From the sequence record MN871445.1: a stretch of 64,000 nucleotides of DNA. One strand, 5' to 3'. The notes under the pieces were generated by a model, which saw only the letters and a list, made by a program, of their open reading frames with translations, ran no database searches and had not been told where the DNA came from. The position numbers and the translations under genes were made by a program. The number at the start of each line of letters is the position of its first letter. Position 1 is the stretch's first letter. Shown piece after piece: positions 12,191 to 46,571 of this stretch.

Positions 12191-12403
12191 ATGGAATCTT
12201 TGGATAAAATCACCATCGAGCAGTTAGCGACCCAGCTGGATAAAATCACCATCAAGCAGTTAGCGACCCATCTGGGCATCAGCGTTTCCACCGTGCGTAA
12301 TCGACTGTCGAAGGGAAAACTCCCTAACCCAACCGAACGCCGCGGTGATCAGTTGTTCTGGAGTAAGTATGATTTACTGGGTTGGGGGATTGACATCCAA
12401 TGA
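12191..12403 (+). CDS. Xis/AlpA-like HTH protein
   Basis: IKQLATHLGISVSTVRNRLSKGKLPNP...W pattern. Confidence 0.75.
   Translation: MESLDKITIEQLATQLDKITIKQLATHLGISVSTVRNRLSKGKLPNPTERRGDQLFWSKYDLLGWGIDIQ
12201..12272 (+). repeat. 36-bp tandem duplication (2 copies, 2 mismatches)
   Basis: tggataaaatcaccatcgagcagttagcgacccagc / tggataaaatcaccatcaagcagttagcgacccatc. Confidence 0.95.
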
Positions 12404-12831
12404 CGCTTTTAATTAGGCAGGGTGCTGGTACCGATGTTGTATTAAGTTACAATACACCCGACCGGATGTTTCAAGCGGTCATGGAAGAATCTGATGTCGG
12501 TGATGTGGTTTTCAAAATCGATAATCGGCTGCGGTGCTATAATTACCCGGCGACTGTGTCTTTCGGTGAAAAGGCACTCATTCAACAAGCTTTGGATGAG
12601 TATGTTCATTATGATGGATTGGATGTACCGCAGTTCATCTGTCATTCTCTCGATGCCGGCGGGATTAAACTTGAACGGTTCCCTTCGAGTCTTTTAACCG
12701 CGTATTGGTCAGTATTTGACGTGAACCTGGTGGTAATCGTCGATTATGGTCACTATGACGCATTGGAAGGTATCGTCGAATCGTCTCTGGTTTCTCGATT
12801 AAACACCCTACTTAAACCACGTTTCATTTAA
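12400..12831 (+). CDS. hypothetical protein
   Basis: ATGA overlap; followed by a hairpin+TATGCC terminator at about 12836-12867. Confidence 0.7.
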   Translation: MTLLIRQGAGTDVVLSYNTPDRMFQAVMEESDVGDVVFKIDNRLRCYNYPATVSFGEKALIQQALDEYVHYDGLDVPQFICHSLDAGGIKLERFPSSLLTAYWSVFDVNLVVIVDYGHYDALEGIVESSLVSRLNTLLKPRFI

Positions 12832-17369: not shown

Positions 17370-18341
17370 ATGACTGACCGCACTCTTTCTTTATACGGCG
17401 CCGGTGGCGCTGGCAGTAATCAGGTTAAACCATTTATTGGTGTAAGTACTCTCCCAGGCTATGCTAAAATGGCCTGTACGCTTATCGACACCAGTGATAG
17501 CAACATCACCGATGGCGTACCGGAAGAGAACGTATTTATCCTGGACGGCGTGGATGGTTCCGGCAAGGTCCGCGCCCAGAACTATGAGGTCATCCTCAAC
17601 ACTACCCGTCAAATTCTTCTTCAGCATCCCTTCGGTGACGTCGCAGTCATCGTGTTTTCTGCAAGCGGCGGTTCCGGTTCGGTGTTCGCCCCAATCATCA
17701 TGCAGGAAGCCATCGCCAAAGGCGTGCCAATTATTGGTATCGTTATTGGTACCCACGGCACTGCTAAAGAAGCGGAAAACACAGTTAATACACTGAAGTC
17801 CATGGACAACATGGCACGTAAGAACGGCGTCCCGTTTGTTATCATCTATGAACGCAACCGTCGCGATTACGGCCGCAAAAAGGTGGACGAAGCAATCCGC
17901 GCAGCCATCCTGCAAATTTCACTGCTGGTTGGTACCATGAACAACAACTCGGGCCTGGACAGCGCCGATATCAAAAACTGGGTCTATTTCCAGTCGGTGA
18001 CGGATGTCCCACCACAATTGGCTTTGCTGGATATTATTCTTAATGAAGAATGTTCTAAGGATATCAGCGATCCTATTTCGGTGGCCAGCATCTATGAAGA
18101 AGGGCACGATGCTGAGTTTCCTTTTGCTTCTGACTACGGTTGCGAAGGGTTTAAAGCCAGTGGAATTGCCCCGGAACATAAAGAAGTTCATTTCGTCATT
18201 TCTATCAGTGATGTGCCCCAGCTCTTCAGTATGGAAAAAGAGCAGGTCGACCGGTATCGTGAGGTTAAAAACTCACGAGTAGTCCAATCATCCCTCACGG
18301 ATAAAAACGACAAAACTACCGACGACGGCATGGTTCTTTAA
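17370..18341 (+). CDS. phuZ: PhuZ phage tubulin
   Basis: YGAGGAGSN, DTSDSN, DGSGK and the tubulin signature SGGSGS; C-terminal DDGMVL tail. Confidence 0.95.
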   Translation: MTDRTLSLYGAGGAGSNQVKPFIGVSTLPGYAKMACTLIDTSDSNITDGVPEENVFILDGVDGSGKVRAQNYEVILNTTRQILLQHPFGDVAVIVFSASGGSGSVFAPIIMQEAIAKGVPIIGIVIGTHGTAKEAENTVNTLKSMDNMARKNGVPFVIIYERNRRDYGRKKVDEAIRAAILQISLLVGTMNNNSGLDSADIKNWVYFQSVTDVPPQLALLDIILNEECSKDISDPISVASIYEEGHDAEFPFASDYGCEGFKASGIAPEHKEVHFVISISDVPQLFSMEKEQVDRYREVKNSRVVQSSLTDKNDKTTDDGMVL

Positions 18342-18345: not shown

Positions 18346-18392
18346 CAACATAAACCACAGGGAGAGGCTAATAGCCTCTCCCCATATGCCGC
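18346..18392 (+). terminator. hairpin with CATA/TATG flanks
   Basis: caacata...gggagaggc-taata-gcctctccc-catatgccg. Confidence 0.75.
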
Positions 18393-18479: not shown

Positions 18480-18500
18480 CTCTTTACATTTATATTACTA
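18480..18500 (+). promoter_or_regulatory. early promoter
   Basis: exact TATATTAC at 18491-18498, ahead of the 11-gene array. Confidence 0.7.
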
Positions 18501-18535: not shown

Positions 18536-18931
18536 ATGTACAAAACTGATAATAAAAGTTATCGGGCAGTTTATTTGTTTGACGTGAGTGAATCATTGCG
18601 GGACCTCGATGATATCATTGCCACCAACTTTCAAATGCCCGATGACCGAATGCGCGGACAAATCATAATTTTGGGTATTGTCCAAGCAATGAAGCAATGG
18701 GGATTGCCTGGTCTGAAAATAAATCCATCAACATATATCCAAGGAGAGGAATGGTTTCATTGGGAAACTCTCGGTGAATCTATTATGGATTTACTAAACG
18801 ACATGGCCCTTTATTTTCGAACTCGACATGGCCAAACATTATATCGATATTGTTCTTCCATCCCGACCTTAGAAATTGATGATATTATTCTGGATGAAGG
18901 AAACATCTTCTTCTGCTTTGAGGCAATATAA
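18536..18931 (+). CDS. acidic array C gene 1
   Basis: GGAG RBS; helical core followed by IDDIILDEGNIFFCF hairpin-like end. Confidence 0.7.
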   Translation: MYKTDNKSYRAVYLFDVSESLRDLDDIIATNFQMPDDRMRGQIIILGIVQAMKQWGLPGLKINPSTYIQGEEWFHWETLGESIMDLLNDMALYFRTRHGQTLYRYCSSIPTLEIDDIILDEGNIFFCFEAI

Positions 18932-19494
18932 TGGAAAACACCAATGTATTACTCGCAACAGGCGTCGTTGCTGACAATATTCGATATCAATCAGAACTCT
19001 TATTTCAACCGGTAGGTCTGACGCCACTAACTCAACAAGAAGCTATTGCTATTGTGCATCGAATGATGGGTGAACTCATCGAAGTTACACAAGCATGGAG
19101 CCGCCGTCAGATGATATCCTGGCCCACCATATTAGAAGTTTGCCGACCAGAATTACTGCACACGCATTTAGAAATCCTCTGGCCAACTAATTGGACCCCA
19201 ACGAACGAAGACGATGAGCCGCCGTACTGTCCTTTGGCGGATGTATTCGTGTCGGAGATATTGGGGGCTGCGGTTAATGTCCTGGATCATCGAATTTTGC
19301 GTGCTATTGTGCGGGATACAAAGAGCTGGGATGTATTCACTTTAATCCCTATCGGCGATACCGGGGACCTCATTTTAAAAAATGAGGGCGATTACCGCAT
19401 CATGGATTGGATGCAGCGATATCAAAATATTGAAGATGAAAAAGCCCGTAGAGAGGCATTGGCCTGGAGTAAACGTAATGGGTATGGATTATGA
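18931..19494 (+). CDS. acidic array C gene 2
   Basis: TAATG stop-start overlap. Confidence 0.7.
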   Translation: MENTNVLLATGVVADNIRYQSELLFQPVGLTPLTQQEAIAIVHRMMGELIEVTQAWSRRQMISWPTILEVCRPELLHTHLEILWPTNWTPTNEDDEPPYCPLADVFVSEILGAAVNVLDHRILRAIVRDTKSWDVFTLIPIGDTGDLILKNEGDYRIMDWMQRYQNIEDEKARREALAWSKRNGYGL

Positions 19495-19939
19495 TGATTA
19501 TGGTGAGTTGTTGGATAAATTGACCCAACCCCCCGTTAACTCGGAACCAGAACCACCCAAACCTGCATCGATTTGTTTGTCGTTTGAAGATGTTATTGAG
19601 TACGCCAATCTGGAATTGGAACAACTTAATGACGTAGCCGCAATTGCATTCAATGCTCAATCAATGCTCCTACCTATCCTGACTGAAGTATTTTATCAAG
19701 AAAAAACGCGGATGGCCGGTAGGATGAGAACGATCACTGAACTTGAGTATTATGGTATCCCCACTCTAGTCGCTGAATCGTTTTATAATGATATCCGCGA
19801 CCGAGTGTTAAATAAGGTATTGAGGCATTATCCGAACGGGGTGCATCAGGTGGATACGGGGTTTTCGTTCATGACTCCCATGGATGTTTTATTTATGCCG
19901 GTGAGATTATCGGAGGTAAAGCATGGTCGTTGGGGATAA
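19478..19939 (+). CDS. acidic array C gene 3
   Basis: GGAG RBS inside the upstream gene. Confidence 0.7.
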   Translation: MGMDYDDYGELLDKLTQPPVNSEPEPPKPASICLSFEDVIEYANLELEQLNDVAAIAFNAQSMLLPILTEVFYQEKTRMAGRMRTITELEYYGIPTLVAESFYNDIRDRVLNKVLRHYPNGVHQVDTGFSFMTPMDVLFMPVRLSEVKHGRWG

Positions 19940-20405
19940 ACCACATTGTTGGATCACTACAGTACAGCCCACGGATGGGCTGTTTGATTACCATTGTCTA
20001 CTTGCACTTACGGGCTTCGCCATCGGTTCTACGGAACTCATGGCTGAAGCCTTGCGTTATGCCCTCGCTATGGTGAATCCAAAGGAAGATGACCCGGTTG
20101 ACGCTGAGATGCTTTGGGAAAATATCGTTGAATATATTCGAGAACTCCCAGCAGAAATGCTAGAACAGTATTTATATTTACGGCGTTGTAACTGGGCAGA
20201 TTTCATACAACTTGAAGCGGATGCTATTACGCAGGCGGTGGTCGCAGTGGCTCAAGAATACAGTGAAATTATTAGGCCAATGATTCGTTGTGGGATCACG
20301 CCTAGAAGCATCACCGATATTGTTGTTATTGATGATGCCGCGTATATTTATTATTACCCAGAGGTAATCTCTAGAGAACATAATCGCTGGATGCTAACTT
20401 CATGA
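19923..20405 (+). CDS. acidic array C gene 4
   Basis: GGAGGT RBS, overlapping start. Confidence 0.7.
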   Translation: MVVGDKPHCWITTVQPTDGLFDYHCLLALTGFAIGSTELMAEALRYALAMVNPKEDDPVDAEMLWENIVEYIRELPAEMLEQYLYLRRCNWADFIQLEADAITQAVVAVAQEYSEIIRPMIRCGITPRSITDIVVIDDAAYIYYYPEVISREHNRWMLTS

Positions 20406-20770
20406 AACCAAATGTCGTTATCTTAAATACTATCTTTATACCTGGTATGGTAACCCACATGAACGTAGACAATAAACTTTACGTTCAAGAGTTATTCCGT
20501 GTGGTCAATATGGCTGACCAACAACACCAGTGTTGGGACCAATGGGATTCAGTAAATCAGGTATTTGAAGAACAATATCCCAATTTACATTATGACATTG
20601 TTGGAGATATCACCAACACGACCATTCAAGAAGCCATGTCCAACTTTGACCAAACCAAAGCCATAATGCGCGAAATAGAGGTAAAGGAAGGTGGGTATTG
20701 TGATTTCGTTGTATTGGGGGTTGATGTTGACTGTATAGCCGTTGAGGTCACCATGTATGAACCGTTTTAA
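20402..20770 (+). CDS. acidic array C gene 5
   Basis: ATGA overlap. Confidence 0.7.
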   Translation: MKPNVVILNTIFIPGMVTHMNVDNKLYVQELFRVVNMADQQHQCWDQWDSVNQVFEEQYPNLHYDIVGDITNTTIQEAMSNFDQTKAIMREIEVKEGGYCDFVVLGVDVDCIAVEVTMYEPF

Positions 20771-21140
20771 TGTTGTTTATCCCTCAACACTCGAACTGTT
20801 GGAGTATTACCCCAATTTAGGATCTAAAACAGCATTCATTAATATCGTATTTTGGATTATTCAAGACCCCACCTTAGAGAGGGTAGAATGCATAGATAAG
20901 CAGGATATTATCGATATCCTGGATTGGGATAATCCGAATCTAACCCCAAATCAAATAAATACATTAGCCAATTGTGTTTACCACGCCGTCAGTATTTATT
21001 GGCGCAAGTATCGACCGTGGTTTGTTGAAATAGGAAGAATCCATCGTGATGGTATCATCAAACTCAATGAAGTTAATCGCCACGCCACCATTTTCTCGGT
21101 CACCCCAATACGACAAGGTAATCATCAATACACCAGCTGA
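20757..21140 (+). CDS. acidic array C gene 6
   Basis: GAGG RBS; FINIVFWIIQ...IIDIL...RHATIF. Confidence 0.7.
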   Translation: MNRFNVVYPSTLELLEYYPNLGSKTAFINIVFWIIQDPTLERVECIDKQDIIDILDWDNPNLTPNQINTLANCVYHAVSIYWRKYRPWFVEIGRIHRDGIIKLNEVNRHATIFSVTPIRQGNHQYTS

Positions 21141-21141
21141 A

Positions 21142-21474
21142 ATGGTATTCGATTGCCCGAACGGGATTGCCTTTAACAAATTCATTGATATGGTGTTAGT
21201 GATTATTCAGCTTGCTAAAAATAGGCATGTGTTAAATACTCATCCGGAGAAAATTACGGCACTTATTCTTACGACGTATCCTGAATTCGGCACCCATTAC
21301 TGCGAAATGGTCAGTCGGCGAGTATTGGCGGCGGCATTAGTACATTACTCGACGCTTAAACCGGCGCTGCCCGCTGATACAACGGCAGATACCATATATC
21401 GGGTAGTTGCAATGGATAAGTACGCCACCGTATTGATGCCAAGAGGACTTCAAAATGATTACTTACGTCTTTGA
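21142..21474 (+). CDS. array C gene 7 (start uncertain, 21046-21142)
   Basis: FIDMVLVIIQ...KYATVL resembles gene 6. Confidence 0.6.
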   Translation: MVFDCPNGIAFNKFIDMVLVIIQLAKNRHVLNTHPEKITALILTTYPEFGTHYCEMVSRRVLAAALVHYSTLKPALPADTTADTIYRVVAMDKYATVLMPRGLQNDYLRL

Positions 21475-21898
21475 GTTACACCCATTTATAGAAGCCAACC
21501 CTGATGTGGCTATTGGGGTGTATCCCTACAACGTATTCTTGAGGGACGTTATTTGGGTGGCTCATCGAGGGCATCGCAAAGCTGCCGACCTCTACGAGTC
21601 CATTTTCGATATACTGGAAACAGTAGACCCCGAGGCCAAGTTACATACAGTGGGAGACATACTTAAATGTATTTGTCAGACAGCAGAGAAATTAAAACCG
21701 TGGCTAGCCCCAACGCTAAAAACATTCGGGACAGAACCAATTCAGCTATCTCAGCTCGAAGTGGTATCGGTATCCATGATGGGGGGAGTAGTATTAAAAG
21801 TAATGACTACTCCTGGATTATCCTATCAGTCGGAGAAAAAATGGACGCCCTGCGAGCCATCCTCAATCTCCCGGCCCTGTATTTCGACGACGCGCTAA
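21455..21898 (+). CDS. array C gene 8
   Basis: GAGGA RBS; FLRDVIW..IFDIL..LKPW. Confidence 0.7.
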   Translation: MITYVFELHPFIEANPDVAIGVYPYNVFLRDVIWVAHRGHRKAADLYESIFDILETVDPEAKLHTVGDILKCICQTAEKLKPWLAPTLKTFGTEPIQLSQLEVVSVSMMGGVVLKVMTTPGLSYQSEKKWTPCEPSSISRPCISTTR

Positions 21899-22242
21899 CC
21901 TTAACCTGTACCGGCTGGGAAAATTATTATGTCCAGTACCGCCAGGAAACAAAACAGTTTCTCTTTTATGACGTGGAAGAATTATTGTCTGCCGCAATAG
22001 AAGAGTGCTTCATGAACCAGGCGGAGTATGATACAAATAGCGCCGCGTTTAATACAATAAGTCAAGTGCAATTCATCACGGATCATCTGTATGAAGCGAT
22101 GCAGTTACTCGATGATATACTTACCATCAATCTTATCGCACGACTGGACGATCAACATCAGATAGGGCTCGTGCGAACGATCGGCGAAGATATAGCCATA
22201 AGGATAGACCGTGCTTGCTACTTTGACAAAAACAGAAAATAA
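21841..22242 (+). CDS. acidic array C gene 9
   Basis: GGAG RBS before ATG 21841. Confidence 0.7.
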   Translation: MDALRAILNLPALYFDDALTLTCTGWENYYVQYRQETKQFLFYDVEELLSAAIEECFMNQAEYDTNSAAFNTISQVQFITDHLYEAMQLLDDILTINLIARLDDQHQIGLVRTIGEDIAIRIDRACYFDKNRK

Positions 22243-22561
22243 ATGGTTGATTATAGACCTCTGCGGACTCATTCAAGAAATAGCTGACAGGGTCCAACGT
22301 TTTAGATTGGACCCAGATAAACTTATTTCCATCGCGGTATTTCATCTGAATTCCAGAGAAAGCCCAATTGTGGTGGACCCAGTATTCGAGAATTTAGAAG
22401 ATGACATCCGTGACAATGATGCTGCATGGGACTTGGTGGAACAACAAATTACTTTATTGATTAAACAATTGGAACTCAAAGTGTCCGCGGACATTTCCAG
22501 TATACTGCAATATGAGTACTTGGAAGATGGCTTGGCCTTAAAGTACTGCTGCGAGAATTAA
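22211..22561 (+). CDS. acidic array C gene 10
   Basis: AAGGA RBS; GTG start overlapping the upstream gene. Confidence 0.65.
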   Translation: MLATLTKTENKWLIIDLCGLIQEIADRVQRFRLDPDKLISIAVFHLNSRESPIVVDPVFENLEDDIRDNDAAWDLVEQQITLLIKQLELKVSADISSILQYEYLEDGLALKYCCEN

Positions 22562-22563
22562 CT

Positions 22564-22935
22564 ATGACCACATATGTCGTCGATGAAGCATCTTCCCGAG
22601 ATGTTATTGAAAAAACAATGGCATTGTTGTTTGAACCTGACGAATGCCTGGCGTGGGAACACATTAATTTAGCTATAAAGACAGCCAATAATGTTATCCA
22701 CGCTTTTTTTACTGACCCTGGCGACATATTGAGTGTAGTTAAAGGGGCTGTCGGCATCTATGATGATTGCGATGATTGGTTAACTGAAGACCACCCTCTG
22801 TTTATTGATTTGATGGAGGCATGTGACGAATTAGTTATGGCGGTTGATGTTCTGGTCGATGACTTGCATTTACCCAACCACGTTAGCAGAGTCAAGATAG
22901 GTGATAATGAAGGCACGGTACTCATTATTGTTTGA
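22564..22935 (+). CDS. acidic array C gene 11
   Basis: 2-nt gap from the upstream stop; highly acidic. Confidence 0.7.
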   Translation: MTTYVVDEASSRDVIEKTMALLFEPDECLAWEHINLAIKTANNVIHAFFTDPGDILSVVKGAVGIYDDCDDWLTEDHPLFIDLMEACDELVMAVDVLVDDLHLPNHVSRVKIGDNEGTVLIIV

Positions 22936-22965: not shown

Positions 22966-23394
22966 ATGCCACAAATTCTTAATAAAATGGATATTGGTGA
23001 TACCGTCACTTTCGACGTATATCCAGCGCCCATTCTAGGCACCCAGTTTAAAAACTGTACCAACTTAGCGATTCTCGATTACGATACCGTTAAGCTGATG
23101 AATATCGACCCCGACGCGATGCATGCAAAAGTGGTAGGGTATCTACCCGCCGCACAAAAACAGGGCAGTTGGGCGAAGGCCAGTGGCTACCCCTGGATTC
23201 GCATTCGTTTGGCAAACGGTACGATAACTGCCATTGGGCAAACCTGGATTAATGCAGACACCATCGTAATTAATGATTCCCTGACAATTACGCTTGTTTT
23301 GACCGATGCCAATCAAACGGATATTGATAAACTCTCGGTTATGATGTCTGCTAATGGCTACGACGCCACCAAGTACTCAATTACCAGTAGTTAA
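22966..23394 (+). CDS. conserved phiKZ-like beta-barrel (SH3-like) protein upstream of the DNA polymerase
   Basis: GDTVTFDVYP..ILG..F..., YPWIRIRL..G...AIG..WI; syntenic position. Confidence 0.55.
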   Translation: MPQILNKMDIGDTVTFDVYPAPILGTQFKNCTNLAILDYDTVKLMNIDPDAMHAKVVGYLPAAQKQGSWAKASGYPWIRIRLANGTITAIGQTWINADTIVINDSLTITLVLTDANQTDIDKLSVMMSANGYDATKYSITSS

Positions 23395-23477: not shown

Positions 23478-23512
23478 ATTTGCCTCTCCTTCGGGAGAGG
23501 CTCTTTTTTTCG
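23478..23512 (+). terminator. intrinsic terminator
   Basis: gcctctcc-ttcg-ggagaggc followed by a T-tract. Confidence 0.8.
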
Positions 23513-23578: not shown

Positions 23579-25813
23579 ATGCGCTCGCCATTTCTTTATC
23601 CTGAAGATGCAGATTACAAACGTGATTTTGCTATCTTTGGTAGATATATTAAAGATGCTGCTTTTTTGCTACACAAGCAAACGGGATATGACTTAGACTA
23701 CTGCACAGACTGGGTACGTAAGTCTATCAATAAAGGTGGGAAGCACGAAGCGAAAAACCCTAAGGCGTTTATACTCAATTCTGAGAATAATGGTAACCGT
23801 AAACGCCAAGTAACGACCGTCACTGAATACATTGCAAATATCGTCAAAAACAATAAGATTGTTGCACCCTCCATGACGGTGTATTCTCATCCGAAACAGA
23901 AAAAGTCATTACTTGCTGAATTTATTTTGCATAAATTGGATATGCGTAAGAAAGCTAAGAAAGAAATGTTCTTAGCTGAAAAACAAATGAACGAAGCAAA
24001 CCGCCTTGTAAAAGAAGCTACGGCGAATAATGACCAAACCATGGCATCACAGCAAGCTATAGTAGCCGCGACCATGTCTACCGAAAAAGCATACTTTAAC
24101 TGCTTACAGACATCTGCAAAAATTGCGGCTAACAGTTTATCCGGTACGTTCGGTTTTGCGGGAACGGTACTCTTTAATAAAACAGCACACTCATCATTAA
24201 CTTCTATTTGCCGTTGCGCTGCGAGTAATGCAAATGCGAATAATGAAAGATTCCTGTCGGGGAATCGACATTATTGGTCCCTCGAAGTAACGTTGAATAA
24301 TATTGTTAATATCTTGACCACGGTAGACTGCAATCGGGTTCGTGAAGTTGTGGAACGTTACGGTCTGGTTTATCCTACCGTTGAACAAGTTGTAGAAGCG
24401 GTTCGGGGATGCACCGATTACTATTGGAGTAAAAGCAGCCCAGCACTATTTCAAAAAGTCGTGGACTTCATACACACCCTGACCCCAGAAGAGCGGGCCG
24501 GGTATCTGTATAACCAGGATGCTTACCATGTAATGAAATGTAATGATCATTTCTTTAGAGTACTCGTTAAGAAAATGATCACCATCCCCGATGAATTACC
24601 GGATGACCCAGACCACTGGATGAAACTAATGGATGAAGATATCCTAATGTTTGCATCGAGGCTATGTAGTCCTTTCATGTCTGGTAAATCAGTAAAAGAT
24701 TTAGAGAACGCTTATAAGGAAGGAAAAAATAAAGATTATTTGCGTTTTGTAGCCGTCGTTAAAAACGTACTGGTAAACCTGCAAGATTATGCTGATTTCA
24801 TTCAAACATTTTGGGCTACCTCGAACCCACCTATGAGTTTGGCTATGATACCGACCATGATGCGGCGTTGCGCAGTACTGTCGGATACAGACTCCACTAT
24901 TTTCACTACTCAAGATTGGACTACATGGTATCAAGGAAAACTTGATTTTACTTATGAGTCAGAATCCGTATCGGCATTGATGGTTTATTTTACCAGTTGC
25001 ATGACTACACATCTCCTGGCAATGCATTCCGCTCAAATGGGTGTGGACCGAGAACAACTGTATACGTTAGCAATGAAATCAGAATTTGCCAACCCTCTAT
25101 TAGGACTAACTACTCGAGGAAAACATTATTACTCTTACGTCAGTGCTAAAGAGGGCAACGTATATAGTGAATACGTTCTGGATATTAAGGGCGTAGGGTT
25201 ACGTAACTCAAAATTACCGCCAAATATCCGAGAATCGAGCGATAACTTTATTCGTCACGTAATGGATACTATCATGAAAGGCGAGAAACTGTCCGTACAT
25301 GAAGTACTTACGCGGGTTGCCGATGAAGAACGAGAAATTATCCGTTCCATTCATGCTGGCGAACCAACTTACTTATCCGTAGCAAAAATCAACACAGCTG
25401 ATGCCTACAAACAAAAAGAACTGAACTCCACATATCAACTATACGGATTATGGGAACAGGTGTTCGCACCCAAGTATGGACATGCCCCATTACCGCCGTT
25501 TGATTGCGTAGCAGTAAATATCGATGCTAACAATAAAAGCGACATGGCGGCTTGGTTGGATAATTCCGGGGACGAGCAGTTCGCTCAACGTTTCAGAAAT
25601 TGGTTGGCAGCAACCGGCAAAGATAAAATAACGCGTATTTTACTACCTACCGAAATACTGCGGGTACATGGGTTACCTAAAGAAATTATTAATGCGTTAG
25701 ATCTACGTAAAGTTTTGATGAATCTGATGGATGCACACTACCTGATTTTAGAATCATTGGGTGTCTTTATTCGCAACCAACGTATCTCCCACCTCGTCTC
25801 TGATACCTATTGA
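23579..25813 (+). CDS. split family-B DNA polymerase, motif B/C (palm-thumb) subunit (phiKZ gp50-like)
   Basis: motif B KIAANSLSGTFG, motif C LSDTDS, GKHY and IKG; no exonuclease domain or motif A. Confidence 0.9.
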   Translation: MRSPFLYPEDADYKRDFAIFGRYIKDAAFLLHKQTGYDLDYCTDWVRKSINKGGKHEAKNPKAFILNSENNGNRKRQVTTVTEYIANIVKNNKIVAPSMTVYSHPKQKKSLLAEFILHKLDMRKKAKKEMFLAEKQMNEANRLVKEATANNDQTMASQQAIVAATMSTEKAYFNCLQTSAKIAANSLSGTFGFAGTVLFNKTAHSSLTSICRCAASNANANNERFLSGNRHYWSLEVTLNNIVNILTTVDCNRVREVVERYGLVYPTVEQVVEAVRGCTDYYWSKSSPALFQKVVDFIHTLTPEERAGYLYNQDAYHVMKCNDHFFRVLVKKMITIPDELPDDPDHWMKLMDEDILMFASRLCSPFMSGKSVKDLENAYKEGKNKDYLRFVAVVKNVLVNLQDYADFIQTFWATSNPPMSLAMIPTMMRRCAVLSDTDSTIFTTQDWTTWYQGKLDFTYESESVSALMVYFTSCMTTHLLAMHSAQMGVDREQLYTLAMKSEFANPLLGLTTRGKHYYSYVSAKEGNVYSEYVLDIKGVGLRNSKLPPNIRESSDNFIRHVMDTIMKGEKLSVHEVLTRVADEEREIIRSIHAGEPTYLSVAKINTADAYKQKELNSTYQLYGLWEQVFAPKYGHAPLPPFDCVAVNIDANNKSDMAAWLDNSGDEQFAQRFRNWLAATGKDKITRILLPTEILRVHGLPKEIINALDLRKVLMNLMDAHYLILESLGVFIRNQRISHLVSDTY

Positions 25814-27164: not shown

Positions 27165-27195
27165 TTGTAAATTTACATAAACGTATATTACTTAG
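27165..27195 (+). promoter_or_regulatory. early promoter P2 of chmA
   Basis: aaatttacataaacg-TATATTAC-ttaggtg. Confidence 0.75.
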
Positions 27196-27320: not shown

Positions 27321-29207
27321 ATGAGTATTAACGACGCTCGCAATCCTGGTAACAACGACGCTGCTCAAGAACGTGCTCACACTGCGGCGCCGCAGTTTGA
27401 CGAGTCTCAAGTGCGCCAGGCTGCTCCGCATCGCAAAACCATTACCGGTAAAGGCGGTGTGAACGCACTCCTGTCCCGTCGTCTCAACCGCGTAGGCGGT
27501 AACGAAGACATCAGCAAAATCGCTGAAATGATGCGCAGCTATCTGCGCAGCCAACTGGATGAACGCTATGTTCCGACTTTCATCATTGTCGACGGCGCTA
27601 CTTACGACCTGGCGGTATCCGCCATCGTCCCGACAGTGCTACTGACCGTACGCGGTGTTAAAACGGTGCTGGCTTATCCGATTCTCGTCGAGCCGCGCGA
27701 TCGTTCCATGGACACTGTCCGTACCGTCCGTGAAAACAACCGCGAACTGTCTCTGCCGGTGGTGACCTCTGATTTCTACGATAATCGTACCGAAGAGAAA
27801 ATCCACAATTCTATCGCTCGTCAGTTCAGCCTGAACCCGGCCGATAGCGACATCAAACTGATCGGTTATTGCACCCTGCCGGTTGAAGTATCTTCCGACG
27901 ATAAATCTGAAATCGAAGACCTGGCCGCCAACGTATTCTCGGCGCTGGAATCCTGGGTCCGCGAACAACCTGGTTCTGAAGAGCCGCGTTTCAACCTGGC
28001 AGAAATCGACAATACCCAAACTCGCTTCACCGGCAAACTGGATTTCTCTCCGGCGCCGATCAAAACTCTGACTGGCCTGCCCGTCCGTAACGACGTGACC
28101 ATCACCACCAAAATGCGTGATATCACGGTCGACAGTCTGCACAGCCAATCCGGCGTTCTGTCCGAAGTGAGCGGTTATATGGACCTGCTCTACGTCGATC
28201 CGCAGATGGAACAAAACCAGTACACTCGTCAGATGTATCTGAACCCGGCGTGCTACCTCCCGAACTTCGTGATTTCTCATCAGGAAATTCTGGTTAACGC
28301 CGTGACTCCGGAACTGGTTCTGTTCGGCCTGGCATCTGCACGTCTGATGCAGCAACCGAACAACGCATTCTACAATGCGTTCAAACCACGCCATGGCGTC
28401 AAAAACGATACCCGTGATATCGGGGCTATCGGTTACGAGTTCGATCCGACTGGCGAAGGCAAAGGCCTCAAAGCGCCTATCGATACCGCAGACTCGACTT
28501 TCAACCTGCAGACTCTTCTGAGCACTGCATTCCGCCCGGGCATGCTGTACAGCCTGGATGTGGTTGACGGCGGTGAGTATTCCTGGGTATACGAAGCGCT
28601 GGTGTATGCTGCGAATGGCGATGCCGCTGCAGAAAACGATGTAATTCAGTACGCAGATAACCTGACCAACGGCCATTTCCGTGCGCTGTGGAACCCGGTT
28701 GAAAACCGCGTTGCGGTAGATTCCGGCGACCTGATTCCGATCGGTTACTACATCGATCCGGAAGGCCAACGTAAAGACCTGCGTGACATCGACTATCTGG
28801 CGCTGCTGAACATGTTCGGTGGTAGTGACATGGACCTGGTTTATCGCTGGTCTGAAACCTTCGGTAATGCAAGTCAATCTCCGCAGCAACGTCTGGATGC
28901 ACGTGTACGTATCCTGAAATCGCTGCTGAACAACAACCTGTTCATCAAACGTATCGCCCATCGCATCACCCTGACCCCGGCGTTCATCGACGTGCTGGCT
29001 ACCGCTATTTCCAAAGCGGGTATCACGATCGTTCCGGAAACCGTGTTCAGCGAACAGCAGACCTATACCCGTGGGTCTACTACCCTGGCTAACTACGCGC
29101 TTACTGGTGGCCAGTCCCCGCTGTTCGCGGGTACCCAGCAGCCGTCCGTAGCCGGTTACAGTTCTGTATACCAGCCGCGTGGCGCAGGCGGCCGTTTCGG
29201 CGGTTAA
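27321..29207 (+). CDS. chmA: chimallin, phage nuclear shell protein
   Basis: 628 aa; LLSRRLNR, G.PVRND.TIT, GYMDLLY, GGEYSW, IP.GYY..P.G..KDLRDID features shared with chimallins; immediately upstream of nvRNAP beta'; early promoters; optimal codons. Confidence 0.93.
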   Translation: MSINDARNPGNNDAAQERAHTAAPQFDESQVRQAAPHRKTITGKGGVNALLSRRLNRVGGNEDISKIAEMMRSYLRSQLDERYVPTFIIVDGATYDLAVSAIVPTVLLTVRGVKTVLAYPILVEPRDRSMDTVRTVRENNRELSLPVVTSDFYDNRTEEKIHNSIARQFSLNPADSDIKLIGYCTLPVEVSSDDKSEIEDLAANVFSALESWVREQPGSEEPRFNLAEIDNTQTRFTGKLDFSPAPIKTLTGLPVRNDVTITTKMRDITVDSLHSQSGVLSEVSGYMDLLYVDPQMEQNQYTRQMYLNPACYLPNFVISHQEILVNAVTPELVLFGLASARLMQQPNNAFYNAFKPRHGVKNDTRDIGAIGYEFDPTGEGKGLKAPIDTADSTFNLQTLLSTAFRPGMLYSLDVVDGGEYSWVYEALVYAANGDAAAENDVIQYADNLTNGHFRALWNPVENRVAVDSGDLIPIGYYIDPEGQRKDLRDIDYLALLNMFGGSDMDLVYRWSETFGNASQSPQQRLDARVRILKSLLNNNLFIKRIAHRITLTPAFIDVLATAISKAGITIVPETVFSEQQTYTRGSTTLANYALTGGQSPLFAGTQQPSVAGYSSVYQPRGAGGRFGG

Positions 29208-29221
29208 GTCTGAAGTAACGT

Positions 29222-29260
29222 CATAATAGCGGGAGGGGTAAAACCCTCCCGCTTTATTTC
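29222..29260 (+). terminator. hairpin after chmA
   Basis: gcgggagggg-taaaa-ccctcccgc-tttattt. Confidence 0.75.
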
Positions 29261-29300
29261 CCACAGCTTCTTTTTTTAGTTAAGCAAACAAAGGGTAATC

Positions 29301-30860
29301 ATGGAAATAAAAGAATTCATCCCTACGAAACGCGCCCCGTATGGGTATGCGGCTTCGACCGGATGCGATATCTATTATGACCCCAGAAGGAAAGGTGTTT
29401 ATCCGGAAATAGCGAATCATGAAGCAACCTTAGCTCGGTTACGCGGCACCCCTATTTTCATCAATGATATCGACACCTCCACCGCTGAAGGTCAGGATAA
29501 ACTTGATTCTCTTCTTTATACCAAATACGACGGCGGGAGTATCAGCATCCTCCCTAGTTGTGAATGTGGGGAAACTACTACTGTATCCAAACTAAATACG
29601 TATTGCCCTAACTGCTCGACAATTGTAGTCCCTCCATCCGAACGTCCAATAGAATCCAACCTCTGGATTCGGGCCCCAGAAGGAGTAAAAGCATTAATCA
29701 ACCCCCAAATGCTTATCATTTTATCGAAAGCGTTTACCATCAATGGTTGTAACTTTCTGGAATGGTTGCTAAATCCCACTTATAAAAATGGGACTCACAA
29801 CAACTTAAAGTTAGAACTTTTCAAAGCGTATAACTTCCCAAGAGGCATCAATGCTTTCTATGACAATTTTGACGACATAGTCACTGCGCTATTGGACCGG
29901 TCCATTTTCAATGGCAACAACTCCAAGCGATTAGAAGTGAAAATGTTCATCGAACAAAACAGGGATCGAGTATTTACTCGGTATATTCCAATACCCAACC
30001 GCATTCTGTTCATTACGGAAAAGGCGATCACTGCAACCTATGCCGACAAACACATGGCCTCGGCACTTGATGCGGTACGCACTATCTCCGATCTAAATCA
30101 ACACATGGAACCCCCGTCAATCCGTAGACGCGAATATGCTGCAGCAAAAGCATGCCTGCAACTAGCGTCGTATTACGTGATGCAGTATAAAAAGATTATC
30201 GGGGGTAAGTATGGGTTCTTGCGAAAACACTTGTTTGGTACTCGACAAGCGTATAGTTTCCGTGCAGTTATTAGTAGTTTGCACGAAGCACATCGCATGG
30301 ATGAACTACATATTCCGTGGGGGGTAGCGGTAGGGGTATTCAGGAAACATCTGGAGAGCAAACTGTTAAGGCGGGGGTATACTCCGAATGAAGCAGTAAA
30401 ACTTTTGTTCGACCATACCCTAACGTACCATCCATTGTTGGACACGCTGTTCAAAGAAATCATTGGCGACCACCCATCTGGGAAAGGGTTTCCATGTTAT
30501 TTCTTGCGTAACCCGACTCTGGACAGATTGTCAGGACAACTATTCCACATTACGTTAGTTAAACCAGATCCAAACATCAAAACGGTAAGTCTATCACTAA
30601 ACGTCATAGCGCCAATGAATGCTGATTTTGACGGCGATGCGCTTGGCGGATTACTCATACTCGACAAAAAGATGTATGAGCGTTTTGAGAGAACTTCTCA
30701 ACACACTGGGGTTCTAGACTTACAGAAAGCCAGAACACTATCCGGTAAAATAACTTTACCGAAACCTGTATTGGCAATTTATGCGAGTTGGATGCATGAA
30801 CCCCCAGCTGACGTAGAAGAAGCCAAGCTGTTCAAAAAGCTATTAGGACAGCATGATTAA
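29301..30860 (+). CDS. non-virion RNA polymerase beta' N-terminal subunit (phiKZ gp55-like)
   Basis: Zn-finger CECG..CPNC, RKHLFG.R, RAVI, RNPTL and the catalytic NADFDGD. Confidence 0.93.
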   Translation: MEIKEFIPTKRAPYGYAASTGCDIYYDPRRKGVYPEIANHEATLARLRGTPIFINDIDTSTAEGQDKLDSLLYTKYDGGSISILPSCECGETTTVSKLNTYCPNCSTIVVPPSERPIESNLWIRAPEGVKALINPQMLIILSKAFTINGCNFLEWLLNPTYKNGTHNNLKLELFKAYNFPRGINAFYDNFDDIVTALLDRSIFNGNNSKRLEVKMFIEQNRDRVFTRYIPIPNRILFITEKAITATYADKHMASALDAVRTISDLNQHMEPPSIRRREYAAAKACLQLASYYVMQYKKIIGGKYGFLRKHLFGTRQAYSFRAVISSLHEAHRMDELHIPWGVAVGVFRKHLESKLLRRGYTPNEAVKLLFDHTLTYHPLLDTLFKEIIGDHPSGKGFPCYFLRNPTLDRLSGQLFHITLVKPDPNIKTVSLSLNVIAPMNADFDGDALGGLLILDKKMYERFERTSQHTGVLDLQKARTLSGKITLPKPVLAIYASWMHEPPADVEEAKLFKKLLGQHD

Positions 30861-30869
30861 GGAGACAAC

Positions 30870-31517
30870 ATGGCACAACTGATATCGGGTGGTCCGAGCA
30901 CGATGGCGGCTTACCTGTTCGGTGAAAACCATCCCAATGTACAAAACTATCTGGAAACGGCGTATCAGCAAGCTCAAGAATCTATTACTGACATCGGTCA
31001 AGCAATGATTCAGGCCGGGCGGCAGTTGGCTGAACGCACAATAAATACGGGCGCTTTCCGACTGGCGCGGGCAGCACTACGCAAAGTGGGTTCTCTCGGG
31101 GTGCAGGATACTATCCAACCACTCGAGACCATCGGTGCGTTGCAGCACGCCCCTACGGCCATGATTCCCGTCATCATGAGTCATCCCGAAATTAAATCTC
31201 GGTATTTGATGGGGCGGTGTGAAGGGTACGGAGATGAGTGGGTTAACCCAACAGGGTCCGCAGTCGCTGGGGACGATCCATTATATCGGGCAGTTATGCA
31301 TACTGCCGTAATCGAACCTGATTCGGAATATGCTAAGTATGACCCTATTTTAGCAGAAGAAACTAACTGGGGGGCATGGCAATACTGGGACGATGTATCT
31401 GAAGATATAGGACTGACGGAAAACAACCGTCTGGACAGTCAGATTACCTATGACGCATTATGGTTAGCGGTAAAAGGTATCGACGATCCGACCTCACGTT
31501 GGAATGCTTCACTGTAA
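30870..31517 (+). CDS. conserved core protein (syntenic candidate for phiKZ gp59/Imp3)
   Basis: AGGAG RBS; directly after nvRNAP beta'N; assignment by synteny only. Confidence 0.45.
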   Translation: MAQLISGGPSTMAAYLFGENHPNVQNYLETAYQQAQESITDIGQAMIQAGRQLAERTINTGAFRLARAALRKVGSLGVQDTIQPLETIGALQHAPTAMIPVIMSHPEIKSRYLMGRCEGYGDEWVNPTGSAVAGDDPLYRAVMHTAVIEPDSEYAKYDPILAEETNWGAWQYWDDVSEDIGLTENNRLDSQITYDALWLAVKGIDDPTSRWNASL

Positions 31518-31597
31518 TGGTGTGTCTGGGAGGAGGGGCTTAGGCTCCTCCTCTTTTTTTACGGATTACCTTTATTTTTTGTCTGTGGAGCGTACTT

Positions 31598-31999
31598 ATG
31601 GCTAAAACAATACCTGTCCCTAGTTTATCCGTAGATGGTTGGATTATAACCCCTACTAAAAAAGTAGATAAATTGTTATGTTATTATTTTTTATCTGAGC
31701 CGTCGCAAAGTCAACTATACACTGTGATCTCACTACCCTCAGAAATTGCAAAGAAAGGAAACTGGCCGAATCAACTTAAAGAGTTGGTTAGCAACGATTT
31801 ACAAACCTTTTTTAGTGCCTATTTCACTGAAGGCGTAAGTGTATATGTTGAAATAAAAGACACTGATGATAATGGAAACCAAATATCACAATACAAAATT
31901 TATAGTCAAGTTATCGTCACCATTGCTGGACAAAAATATTCTGTGGCAAAAATGGCTACAGTATTAAATTCTCAGATTGTTAATCTCGCAGATGCATAG
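31598..31999 (+). CDS. conserved core protein, possibly gp25-like baseplate/sheath initiator
   Basis: 133 aa, PSLS..GW, size and beta-rich C-terminus; function is inferred. Confidence 0.45.
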   Translation: MAKTIPVPSLSVDGWIITPTKKVDKLLCYYFLSEPSQSQLYTVISLPSEIAKKGNWPNQLKELVSNDLQTFFSAYFTEGVSVYVEIKDTDDNGNQISQYKIYSQVIVTIAGQKYSVAKMATVLNSQIVNLADA

Positions 32000-32010
32000 A
32001 GGTAATCAAA

Positions 32011-32604
32011 ATGGCAAGTAAAGAAGATATCAAAATGGCAGTGGATTTAGGACTCAAGGCTGCTAACGCTTTGATTGGTTCTGCCGAAGAAATGCGCCGG
32101 GGTATCTACATCGATGAATTTCGCCAGATGTACTTGCCTATTTTGGCCACCCCAGGTTCAGATTGGTCTCCATGGTTCAGATTCGTAACTGACCCCCGTG
32201 CCGTCACTGATGTTTATGACCGCTCGGGTAAGCTGATGTATACCGTTCCGGCGATGGCAGTGCCTATCGGCACCCAGGTTAGTGGTGACCGGGGTGAATC
32301 CTACTACGATAAAATCCAAAGGGTAATGTTAGTTGCCAGAAATAACCCCAAGGCAGCCATCGCGATGCAGGAACAAGCCATGCATGATGCGGTAGTTGGT
32401 GGCGGGGGCAATAAACATATTTTGGATAATCGAATTAAACTCAACAAAATCCTGGTGGCTGAAGGGTACCCCCCATTACCGATTCCAGGGACCAATGGGT
32501 TTACTGGAATTACTGAAAAAGATACTCAGCCCAACACAGAAAACCAGACAACAAACGAAACTTTAGCGAAGGCCAAATACACCGATGAGTACGACGAGCT
32601 CTGA
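32011..32604 (+). CDS. conserved hypothetical protein
   Basis: GAGGT RBS; 197 aa. Confidence 0.7.
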   Translation: MASKEDIKMAVDLGLKAANALIGSAEEMRRGIYIDEFRQMYLPILATPGSDWSPWFRFVTDPRAVTDVYDRSGKLMYTVPAMAVPIGTQVSGDRGESYYDKIQRVMLVARNNPKAAIAMQEQAMHDAVVGGGGNKHILDNRIKLNKILVAEGYPPLPIPGTNGFTGITEKDTQPNTENQTTNETLAKAKYTDEYDEL

Positions 32605-33718
32605 TACAACAATAGCTTCATTTCACGATGTTCATTTTGGGCATCCAAATACGCGCTATGATAACATTATTCGTGGGATGGAAAAAGACATTTGTGCATC
32701 AGATCCGTTTATTCGTAACCTGACCTATTTGTTTTATCCTGGCGATGTTTTTGACCGGTTATTAATTTTACCGGAACAGGGAATCCCGGCGATCCGCCGG
32801 GAGTTCAGACGCCAACTAGAAATATGTCAAGCTTACGGTATTTCTGTTCGTGTATTAGAAGGCACCCCGTCCCACGACTGGCATCAATCTAAATTGATAT
32901 TAAGTGTCGCTGAAGAAATGGGGTTTACTGGTGATTTAAAGTACGTCGATACTTTGTGTGTCGAAATCACGCCCAAAGGCCACAGCATTTTGTATGTTCC
33001 TGACGAGTGGCGTACCGATCTCCAACAAACCTATCTGGAAGCCCTGGAGGCGATTAAAGCTGCTGGATTAGAACAGGTGGATTATTGTTTATTCCACGGT
33101 CAATTTACCCATCAGTTTCCTCCGGAGTGGCAGGTAGGGTGTCATGATGTCGATGCCTGGCAGTTATTGGTAAAGCATTATCTTTTTGCAGGGCATATCC
33201 ACACACCATCTAAAAAAGGAAAGATTATTGTTGCGGGGTCCTATGACCGACTGCGACATGGTGAGGAACACCCGAAAGGACATTACCGGGTAACGGTAAA
33301 AAGGGATGGGGATGACGTTATTGAATTTATTGAGAATAAAGAAGCAAAAACTTATTTGACTCTTGATGTCAGTGGACAAAGCGTCGAATCCATTTATGGT
33401 TATGTTGAATCGAAAATACATGGGCTTCCGGTTAATTCTTTTATTCGGATAAGCGGCAATCGAGACCAAAGTCTAAGAATGGTCAAGAAAGCACTTACTG
33501 ATAATTATCCCGAATATAGATGGGATATTATGTTTGAAAAAACAAAAAAGCAACCGAAAACAGTAAGTCTAGATTCCACACCCATACAAAAAACTACCGT
33601 GACCCTAGGGGCGTTAGAAGATGCAATACTGCAACGTTTAGAACAATCTGGCCTATCTCCTAATGTGATAGACCACGCCAAACAACTATATAAGGACAGC
33701 AAACATGAGTTTGCGTGA
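32585..33718 (+). CDS. SbcD/Mre11-like metallophosphoesterase nuclease
   Basis: DVHFG, GDVFD, GTPSHD, HG and GHIH motifs. Confidence 0.9.
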   Translation: MSTTSSDTTIASFHDVHFGHPNTRYDNIIRGMEKDICASDPFIRNLTYLFYPGDVFDRLLILPEQGIPAIRREFRRQLEICQAYGISVRVLEGTPSHDWHQSKLILSVAEEMGFTGDLKYVDTLCVEITPKGHSILYVPDEWRTDLQQTYLEALEAIKAAGLEQVDYCLFHGQFTHQFPPEWQVGCHDVDAWQLLVKHYLFAGHIHTPSKKGKIIVAGSYDRLRHGEEHPKGHYRVTVKRDGDDVIEFIENKEAKTYLTLDVSGQSVESIYGYVESKIHGLPVNSFIRISGNRDQSLRMVKKALTDNYPEYRWDIMFEKTKKQPKTVSLDSTPIQKTTVTLGALEDAILQRLEQSGLSPNVIDHAKQLYKDSKHEFA

Positions 33719-34523
33719 TTTTTCTTTACGGGAGATGGGTGCAATACCCATCTCCATTGGGACAAGCTTGGCTATAGAAGCATTACGTCAACCCAACGTA
33801 CCCAACTACGACGCACTCTGGGTAAATTTAAGAACACTGTTTCGCAATCTAATGTCATGTGTTCCCACTCATGTCCGTGACGACGCCAACGATAGAGATG
33901 TATCTACCGTACTCGAAGAAGAGATGGGGCATATCGCTGAAGCAGTAGCTATACTCAGTAATGGCACCAAAGCCGTTAAGTGGTACATGAGTAAACCAGA
34001 AACGTTGGTCAAAATACTACCAGACGCCATTATAAGGGCACCCAAAACAAATCTACAAAAGTCTCAGGCTGCCTTATGCGATGCTGTGTTAGGTAGGCTG
34101 ATTGCAAAATATCAGAAAGATATCCAGGTATTTTCTCCGATTATGTATGGGCAAGGGAAAGCCATGGTACTTACTCATTTCCCCGAAGACCTGTTGAGTC
34201 GCAAGCATTTCTCTGAAATGTATTTATTAGAGTCCCACACAGGTAAAATAAAAGGACATGATGAATTCAATACAAAACTCGGAGATATCGATCAATATCC
34301 TAAACTCCCATTTAATGGATTTACGCTAACAATATTTGGTGATAAGCAAGTATTGATTTATCAGATGCCAAATAAAATCAGGACCATGGTGTTAGAGGTG
34401 GCTAAGAAAGCTGACTGGACTCCAATGACCACCAAGGATAGAATGTTGTTAACGTTAAACACCATAAAAAATCAATACGACCGTGAAGTACTTAAAAGCA
34501 TTTTAATGAAATGCAAGTATTGA
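33705..34523 (+). CDS. FEN/T4 RNase H-like (PIN-fold) conserved protein
   Basis: LWVNLRTLFRN resembles FEN motif I; LTH.P.D and ESHTG conserved blocks. Confidence 0.5.
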   Translation: MSLRDFSLREMGAIPISIGTSLAIEALRQPNVPNYDALWVNLRTLFRNLMSCVPTHVRDDANDRDVSTVLEEEMGHIAEAVAILSNGTKAVKWYMSKPETLVKILPDAIIRAPKTNLQKSQAALCDAVLGRLIAKYQKDIQVFSPIMYGQGKAMVLTHFPEDLLSRKHFSEMYLLESHTGKIKGHDEFNTKLGDIDQYPKLPFNGFTLTIFGDKQVLIYQMPNKIRTMVLEVAKKADWTPMTTKDRMLLTLNTIKNQYDREVLKSILMKCKY

Positions 34524-34585
34524 TTTTTTACCGTAGATAACCATCATTTGTACTGTTATCACTATAAATAAGGAATCACACCACC

Positions 34586-35281: not shown

Positions 35282-35283
35282 CG

Positions 35284-35322
35284 TCATATACGGGAGGGCT
35301 TTTGCCCTCCCTTTATGCCGTA
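35284..35322 (+). terminator. hairpin with CATA/TATG flanks
   Basis: cgtcatatac-gggagggc-tttt-gccctccc-tttatgccg. Confidence 0.8.
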
Positions 35323-35382
35323 TTACCTAAAAGGTAGTTTCTTACAGACGGTCGCCATGTTATACGTAGTAAAAGGATGCAT

Positions 35383-35412
35383 TCAAAAAACTTAAACACC
35401 TATATTACTATT
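35383..35412 (+). promoter_or_regulatory. early promoter
   Basis: aaaaaacttaaacacc-TATATTAC. Confidence 0.78.
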
Positions 35413-35438
35413 GGGACTATCTGTATAAGGGGATATCC

Positions 35439-36986: not shown

Positions 36987-37011
36987 AAATACTGATCCTG
37001 GAGCTATAAAA

Positions 37012-38529: not shown

Positions 38530-38531
38530 TA

Positions 38532-39917: not shown

Positions 39918-39920
39918 CAT

Positions 39921-39955
39921 AACGGCATAAAGGGAGAGGCTTCGGCCTCTCCCTC
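39921..39955 (-). terminator. hairpin with TATG flank
   Basis: on the minus strand: gggagaggc-cgaa-gcctctccc-tttatgccg. Confidence 0.75.
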
Positions 39956-39977
39956 CCACCACTTCGACTATTTATTT

Positions 39978-40322: not shown

Positions 40323-40337
40323 GAATGCCTCTCGATA

Positions 40338-40368
40338 GCCAAAATAATTATAGACCTATATTACTAGA
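40338..40368 (+). promoter_or_regulatory. early promoter
   Basis: aaaataattatagacc-TATATTAC. Confidence 0.8.
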
Positions 40369-40410
40369 ATGTAGTACCACAATAAATTGATAGAGTCATA
40401 GGATAAAAAC

Positions 40411-46520: not shown

Positions 46521-46524
46521 TGTG

Positions 46525-46568: not shown

Positions 46569-46571
46569 CTT

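Follow-up and report, generated by a model that had tools for sequence, protein, structure and literature searches.

The DNA analysed here, bases 1-64000 of Serratia phage KpHz_2 (MN871445) and hereafter called the window (64,000 nucleotides, nt), comes from a chimallivirus (nucleus-forming jumbo phage) of the genus Eowynvirus. Between the genes for PhuZ and for a divergent family B DNA polymerase, positions 18536-22935 are filled by 11 plus-strand genes (g1 to g11) encoding proteins of 110-187 amino acids (aa), all of which carry a hypothetical-protein annotation only. A preliminary description, made from the letters alone, had seen eleven acidic, translationally coupled open reading frames (ORFs) of about 110-190 aa behind one promoter, and had taken them for one degenerate paralog array, possibly of nuclear-import adaptors. 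The arrangement itself was confirmed. The junction gaps from g1 to g11 are, in order, -1, -17, -17, -4, -14, +1, -20, -58, -32 and +2 nt, so that all neighbouring genes overlap or are separated by at most 2 nt. Moreover, the gene boundaries are those annotated in Klebsiella phage vB_KvM-Eowyn (genus Eowynvirus). A GGAG/GAGG-like (Shine-Dalgarno-like) site precedes most of the start codons. In structural and evolutionary terms, the array is very probably a translationally coupled operon that is transcribed early, occupies a fixed slot and encodes small accessory proteins, most of them acidic and largely helical.

The operon and its boundaries

The region is 98% identical to Eowyn and 82% identical to KpGz_1, and the latter phage was used to measure selection. 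All eleven genes are under purifying selection against KpGz_1 (dN/dS 0.006-0.28); for g10 the ratio was not computable due to saturation of dS (dN 0.10). Because these ratios are low, the eleven array ORFs are, on this evidence, real genes. Identity to KpGz_1 is uneven along the array, ranging from 98.9% for g2 to around 69% for g5, g6 and g8, with the flanking core genes at 96-97%. The acidic character that had been assigned to the whole array holds for 8 of the 11 proteins (pI 4.1-4.8), compared to 7 among 34 proteins of matched size from the window (Fisher p=0.003), and does not hold for g6, g7 and g8, which are neutral or basic. Some peculiarities of the sequence are worth recording here. 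The unusually long overlaps of g8 with g9 (21841-21898, 58 nt) and of g9 with g10 (22211-22242, 32 nt) follow from starts taken from the Eowyn annotation. The TGA stop of the Eowyn g6 gene reads CGA in KpHz_2 (21111-21140), making g6 9 codons longer and bringing its new stop against the ATG of g7. The KpHz_2 record is titled "Serratia phage", yet its host field gives Klebsiella pneumoniae and Eowyn, to which it is 98% identical, is a Klebsiella phage. DNA nearly identical to KpHz_2 is also present in contigs of several wastewater metagenome runs; a look through the public runs that hold this DNA turned up no RNA-seq of infected cells.

The promoter proposed for the array corresponds to the early-promoter-type motif TATATTAC. 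The raw count of this motif in the window, 4 against 3.1 expected, is not significant. All four copies (4/4), in any case, are intergenic and on the plus strand, 5' of g1, of chimallin, of a gp68 homolog and of an RNA polymerase (RNAP) subunit gene, and they share an A-rich/TTTACA-like element, located 10-25 nt upstream at the three copies other than that of g1. The same motif has been published for promoters of phiKZ and 201phi2-1 (PMC7058600). The intergenic sense placement of all the copies and the match to the published motif support a promoter ahead of the array, and the four copies look like a set of early (virion RNA polymerase) promoters of the chimallivirus type.

At the other end, an intrinsic terminator-like hairpin with a T-run closes the unit. 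As the homolog of phiKZ gp49 (g12; Pfam SH3DP, PF20287), which has the SH3 fold associated with phage DNA polymerases, precedes this terminator, the transcription unit most likely comprises 12 genes, with gp49/SH3DP as the last one, and not 11. The hairpin found after the PhuZ stop codon has its T-run on the minus strand only, so a role as PhuZ terminator is not obvious. Coordinates of all these features are collected in Table 1, together with those of chimallin and of the homologs of phiKZ Imp1/PicA, Imp3 and Imp6; by these tblastn matches, core import machinery is encoded within the window.

Table 1. Genes and signals of the array and of its surroundings in the KpHz_2 window
Feature	Positions	Strand	Description
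PhuZ	17370-18341		stop codon at 18341
Hairpin	18356-18386		14-bp stem, after PhuZ stop; upstream boundary of unit
TATATTAC motif, early-promoter type	18491-18498	+	intergenic, 45 nt before g1 ATG
g1	18536-18931	+	131 aa, pI 4.5; single-copy frame gene; orthologs in L020, L021, L023, L024
g2	18931-19494	+	187 aa, pI 4.8; best-conserved array member, dN/dS 0.006
g3	19478-19939	+	153 aa, pI 4.7; frame gene, single copy; shared with Erwinia phage pEa_SNUABM_54
g4	19923-20405	+	160 aa, pI 4.4; marginal member of central family (only at threshold E<0.01)
g5	20402-20770	+	122 aa, pI 4.2; central tandem paralog family
g6	20757-21140	+	127 aa, pI 6.4; central paralog family
g7	21142-21474	+	110 aa, pI 8.6; central paralog family
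g8	21455-21898	+	147 aa, pI 6.1; central paralog family
g9	21841-22242	+	133 aa, pI 4.3; single-copy frame gene
g10	22211-22561	+	116 aa, pI 4.3, GTG start; single-copy frame gene; position matches phiKZ gp47 (Imp2)
g11	22564-22935	+	123 aa, pI 4.1; single-copy frame gene; position matches phiKZ gp48 (Imp4)
g12	22966-23394	+	142 aa; phiKZ gp49 homolog, Pfam PF20287 SH3DP; core gene, last of unit
Terminator-like hairpin and T-run	23482-23501	+	intrinsic type, 8 bp, 6 GC; ends unit, precedes DNA polymerase gene
DNA polymerase, divergent family B	23579-25813		directly after operon terminator
TATATTAC copy	27184-27191	+	upstream of chimallin ATG
Chimallin	starts 27321 (ATG)
phiKZ Imp3 (gp59) homolog	31047-31496		tblastn E 1e-8
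phiKZ Imp6/ChmC (gp67) homolog	34640-35200		tblastn E 7e-17
TATATTAC copy	35401-35408	+	upstream of gp68 homolog (35439)
phiKZ Imp1/PicA (gp69) homolog	37009-38490		tblastn E 7e-29
TATATTAC copy	40357-40364	+	upstream of RNAP subunit gene (40411)

Central paralogs within a conserved frame

No significant link among the eleven proteins was obtained with blastp, with single-family iterative hidden Markov models (HMMs) or with hhalign of shallow profiles. Related loci were collected from sequence collections as follows. Three remote homologs, whose contigs were used, came from searching 1.84 billion representatives by HMMER with the alignment of g11; a metagenome scan with a 5-sequence alignment of gp49 homologs, together with these contigs, yielded the syntenic loci L020, L021, L023 and L024, and a scan of IMG/VR with the gp49 alignment gave 4 loci. 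The 426 ORFs that the window contains in its six frames were all searched with the family HMMs. The best non-self match was another array gene for the HMMs of g5, g6, g7, g8, g9 and g11, as exemplified by the g6 HMM, which found g7 at E 0.0044, and the g8 HMM, which found g6 at E 0.0089. Held-out members of the group g5-g8 were recovered by leave-one-out HMMs: that of g6 and g8 detected g7 (1.8e-5), that of g6 and g7 detected g8 (1.3e-3), and that of g6, g7 and g8 detected g5 (9.7e-4). Iteration converged at 24 sequences, namely g5-g8 of four Eowynviruses, three each from L024 and L021, and one each from L020 and L019, all of them located at the centre of the slot and with no outside ORF recruited. 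When the threshold was relaxed to 0.01, g4 joined this family.

The tree of the central family contains seven orthologous groups on long stems (1-3 substitutions per site) with an unresolved, star-like base, which argues that the duplications are old. Copy number ranges from 1 to 4 or more across related uncultured phages. The family was found only in Eowynvirus and in a few of these uncultured relatives, and a search of 5.8 billion proteins with the central-family alignment returned the same clade only. From these profile comparisons, g5-g8, and marginally g4, are a real, very diverged and old tandem paralog family. The motifs that the preliminary description had seen in common between g6 and g7 and between g6 and g8 are real and are aligned in the family alignment (FI..V..IIQ, I.DIL, KPW/KP.L and (R/K).AT(I/V)), with (R/K).AT(I/V) falling in its C-terminal strand pair.

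Support from a shared fold is modest. The AlphaFold2 model of g6 exhibits a four-helix body and an unfolded C-terminal tail, with a predicted local distance difference test (pLDDT) value of 64 and a predicted template modelling (TM) score of 0.62. A fold search of BFVD with this model, in which ranks refer to at most 2,000 aligned candidates, returned g6 itself and, at rank 19 and rank 24, two further proteins of Eowyn, whose lengths of 110 and 147 aa equal those of g7 and g8. The 110-aa match (TM 0.41/0.47) had a probability of 0.69, the highest of the non-self matches, and the 147-aa match gave TM 0.35/0.31.

The genes g1, g2, g3, g9, g10 and g11 have one ortholog each in every related phage, with their order kept, and are strongly constrained (dN/dS 0.006-0.11). 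The comparison of loci thus shows an operon composed of a conserved frame (g1-g3 on the 5' side and g9-g11 on the 3' side) around a centre of variable copy number. No account of this frame-and-centre organisation or of the paralog family was found in the literature searched. The proposal of one paralog array holds, by the leave-one-out profiles, for g5-g8 with g4 as a marginal member, and does not extend to g1-g3 and g9-g11. The g2 family is also present in Moabite (gp30), FBKp24, KpLz-2_45, L025 and meta44k, and weakly in RP12, with which it has a GDYRI motif in common. A weak link of g2 to phiKZ gp43 (14-21% probability) was dropped as inconsistent, since it involves the N-terminus of gp43, whereas the RP12 relative of g2 matches through its C-terminus. 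At the 3' end, g11, like its remote homologs P0008 and P0009, always directly precedes the gp49 homolog.

Two further observations concern the surroundings of the frame. The g3-family HMM weakly matches a 143-aa ORF at 12400-12831 (+), with E 0.007 of 426 ORFs, which may be a distant copy. Between PhuZ and g1, two of the related loci carry extra genes, with ORFs of 485 and 75 aa in L020 (2590-4277) and of >1086 and 75 aa in L021 (1-3235).

The features that had been described as a layout common to all eleven proteins fared less well. The shared I.(D/E).L motif is present in its strict form in only 4 of the 11 proteins, which is not significant (p=0.09). The terminal hydrophobic hairpin is a weak feature: a regular expression written post hoc detected it in 4-5 of the 11 proteins compared to around 10% of controls (p about 0.01-0.04), and the AlphaFold2 tails are unfolded. 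Applied to slot proteins from many genera, the same post hoc expression matched 30%, compared to 10% of controls, and by eye strand-turn-strand C-termini were detected in many slot proteins of many genera, Imp2 and Imp4 of phiKZ included. An unsupervised expectation-maximisation search for a C-terminal motif shared by the slot proteins, with Eowynvirus kept out of the training set, failed to converge and left slot proteins and controls unseparated. Likewise, Chou-Fasman profiles revealed no clear difference between slot proteins and controls, with p=0.035 for the last 10 residues alone.

The slot in phiKZ and in other chimalliviruses

The core block of Chimalliviridae has the order gp42-like gene, PhuZ, slot, gp49/SH3DP, DNA polymerase, gp52-like gene and chimallin, and in every chimallivirus genus fetched small overlapping genes are followed by gp49/SH3DP and then by the polymerase. 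The preliminary description had compared the array to phiKZ gp40-gp49. The slot is indeed syntenic; its true counterpart is narrower. In phiKZ the order is PhuZ, gp40-41.3, gp42 on the reverse strand, gp43-48, gp49 and polymerase. Because the reverse-strand gp42 splits the phiKZ interval, and a gp42-like gene lies upstream of PhuZ in KpHz_2, the counterpart of the array is gp43-gp48. Some matches within phiKZ 28000-48000 (L002, a set of 30 ORFs) may also reflect paralogs, as the gp46 profile matches gp36 (E 0.0014) and that of gp41.2 matches gp53 (E 0.0019).

Two genes of this phiKZ interval are import factors. The product of orf47, Imp2, is needed for the import of Nlp1 and is itself imported in an Imp1-dependent manner; orf48 encodes Imp4, which together with Imp5 (orf287) is needed for the import of TopA. 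Imp2, Imp4 and Imp5 have been described as cargo-specific adaptors that are conserved only among Pseudomonas phiKZ-like phages (bioRxiv 10.1101/2024.03.27.586873; 10.64898/2026.09.21.753271). In phiKZ, imp2 and imp4 are without disruptive transposon insertions. The identification of gp47 as Imp2 in the preliminary description was therefore correct, and that of gp48 as Imp5 was not: gp48 is Imp4, and Imp5 is gp287, encoded elsewhere in the genome. In KpHz_2, g11 takes the place of Imp4 as the final small gene ahead of gp49/SH3DP and the polymerase.

With tblastn, Imp4 was detected only within the genus Phikzvirus, at identities of at least 95%, so the lack of homology between the array proteins and Imp4 constitutes weak evidence. 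Comparison of the array families by hhalign, proposed earlier as a check, gave no significant links among the shallow profiles, those of the phiKZ slot included, except that between g2 and the Moabite gp30 family. These negatives carry little weight, because the positional orthologs of Moabite and FBKp24 also reach a probability of only around 10%. The Imp4 family (A10) matched the g11 family at E 0.097 (rank 5 of 87, global mode), which is not significant. A central-family gene of L021 scored z 3.7 against Imp4 over a local stretch ("YPNG + hairpin"), the same value as that of Imp4 against its positional ortholog in PhiPA3, and the best weak signal for Imp2 was a central-family gene of L024 (z 4.4).

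The AlphaFold2 model of g11 also consists of four helices and an unfolded C-terminal tail, with a pLDDT of 75, the other four of the five models being near 50. In both g6 and g11 this unfolded tail is formed by around 22 conserved, hydrophobic residues. Among the better matches of the g11 model is a protein of 100 aa from Erwinia phage Ea35-70 (TM 0.50/0.59), which may be the product of the last slot gene of Ea35-70, as the length is exactly the same. No phiKZ protein ranks in the top 50 of BFVD for either the g6 or the g11 model.

Candidate functions and known systems

Position, size, charge and evolutionary behaviour of the array proteins, along with the presence of core import genes, lead us to favour, weakly and as a tentative reading, that they may be lineage-specific adaptors for nucleus import. 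Such adaptors would recognise specific proteins of phage or host and hand them to Imp1/PicA to be taken into the phage nucleus. The duplication and rapid divergence seen in the central family would then track the cargo set or the host, and the conserved hydrophobic C-terminal tail could, speculatively, serve as a docking element.

Several results weigh against reading the eleven genes as one family of import adaptors. None of the eleven proteins was significantly similar to phiKZ Imp2 or Imp4 by blastp, tblastn, HMM, hhalign or Foldseek, nor to any other protein of phiKZ gp40-48 by blastp, tblastn, hhalign or Foldseek, and pairwise blastp among the eleven proteins, phiKZ gp40-48 and Moabite gp27-36 revealed nothing significant. 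Position predicts function poorly, because known import factors account for only 2 of the six or more slot genes of phiKZ. Hhalign, profile and fold tests gave no significant link of g1-g3 and g9-g11 to the centre or to one another, so significant similarity of sequence, profile or fold does not join every member of the array, and in the slots of Moabite, phiKZ and RAY no internal paralogy was detectable. Both AlphaFold2 models are of middling confidence, and the g11 model matched no other array protein in BFVD, g6-g8 included. Scanning g1-g10 against Pfam and PHROGs, and g11 against Pfam, gave nothing above threshold; searches of PDB sequences with the family profiles of g5-g8 and g11 produced no match, and neither fold searches of PDB with the g6 and g11 models nor searches of ESM Atlas with the sequence of g8 and the model of g11 returned anything bearing on function. 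The top 20 sub-threshold matches of slot-family HMMs fell on slot ORFs more often (mean 17.2, range 14-20) than those of seven control HMMs (mean 12.3, range 8-17; p=0.0017), an enrichment that may reflect composition, since 2 of the 7 control HMMs also favour slot ORFs. A link of the whole array beyond its centre is not established, with this enrichment of weak matches and the similar models of g6 and g11 as hints only.

Part of this evidence would be expected from a permissive slot that gathers unrelated ORFans with no common function or origin, in which g5-g8 alone are duplicates and the layout is generic to small phage proteins. The lack of significant similarity of g1-g3 and g9-g11 to each other or to the centre, the isolation of the g11 model, the failure of the cross-validated motif search, the Chou-Fasman profiles and the unenriched I.(D/E).L motif all point in this direction. 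Nevertheless, we find such a slot slightly less likely than adaptors, as the array is significantly more acidic than size-matched controls, the slots of different genera retain the number, size and tight coupling of their genes, sub-threshold matches fall within the slot more often than those of control HMMs do, and the g6 and g11 models share a four-helix body followed by an unfolded hydrophobic tail. About as likely as adaptors would be early host-takeover or anti-defence proteins that bind host or immune factors in the cytoplasm, with an arms race driving the central family. The early-type promoter, the small, acidic proteins without recognisable domains, their genus-restricted distribution and fast evolution (g5, g6 and g8 being 69% identical compared to 96-97% for the flanking genes), and the variable copy number and star-like tree of the centre are all consistent with this role; on the other hand, constraint on the frame genes is strong, every genus examined has the slot at a fixed place within the core replication/nucleus block rather than in a variable accessory region, and in phiKZ the slot genes of known function are import factors only. 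A transcription unit shared with the SH3DP gene and lying directly upstream of the polymerase, an adjacency kept throughout the family, and a conservation of g2 equal to that of core genes would suit replisome accessory subunits or assembly factors, co-expressed with SH3DP and acting with the adjoining family B polymerase. This role is unlikely, however, as most array proteins diverge much more quickly than the polymerase and lack conservation across genera, which would be unusual for stoichiometric parts, and the searches gave no match, in fold or in sequence, to known replication proteins.

In its broadest form, the import-adaptor reading would cover the whole PhuZ-to-gp49 slot of Chimalliviridae as one hyper-diverged superfamily of Imp1/PicA-dependent cargo adaptors, Imp2 and Imp4 included, built of a strand at the N-terminus, a body of four helices and a hydrophobic hairpin at the C-terminus docking on the import machinery, with tandem duplication at the centre as a route to new cargo or hosts; we consider so wide a generalisation distinctly improbable. 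Cargo-specific import factors are so far known only from phiKZ-like Pseudomonas phages and have been reported not to be conserved elsewhere. If the slot did hold their functional counterparts, the array would provide a list of 11 candidate genes for the choice of nuclear cargo, host proteins included, in chimalliviruses of Klebsiella, Serratia, Erwinia and E. coli, and, were the proteins adaptors, the evolution of cargo range would be visible in the variable central family. If they act instead in host takeover in the cytoplasm, the slot would be a hotspot, present throughout the family, where early genes evolve fast in the midst of a core block.

The array can be compared with three known systems. 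It resembles the gene "accordions" of large viruses in its head-to-tail copies, in a copy number that varies between close relatives, and in the long branches and star-like tree of these copies, and differs from them in that its copies are very old and each under purifying selection, with no recent amplification seen. With phiKZ the differences are the lack of detectable sequence, profile or fold similarity of the array proteins to Imp2 and Imp4, and the absence from the phiKZ slot of detectable internal paralogy like that of g5-g8. The likenesses are positional and biochemical: Imp2 and Imp4 are the last two genes before gp49/SH3DP and the polymerase, as are g10 and g11 here, their sizes are 178 and 127 aa compared to 116 and 123 aa for g10 and g11, and they are acidic (pI 4.5 and 4.7). 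They are also restricted at the sequence level to one genus, and homologs of Imp1/PicA, Imp3 and Imp6 are present in KpHz_2 too. The slots of the other chimalliviruses (Moabite gp27-36, FBKp24 gp320-327, RAY gp211-218, Goslar gp235-242 and PhiPA3 gp38-45) hold genes that are all annotated as hypothetical, and their gene families are genus-specific except for g2, which is common to Moabite gp30, FBKp24 and KpLz-2_45, and g3, which is shared with pEa_SNUABM_54. In any case, these slots have the same position, strand and tight overlaps as the KpHz_2 array, with 7-11 genes that encode mostly proteins of 100-190 aa.

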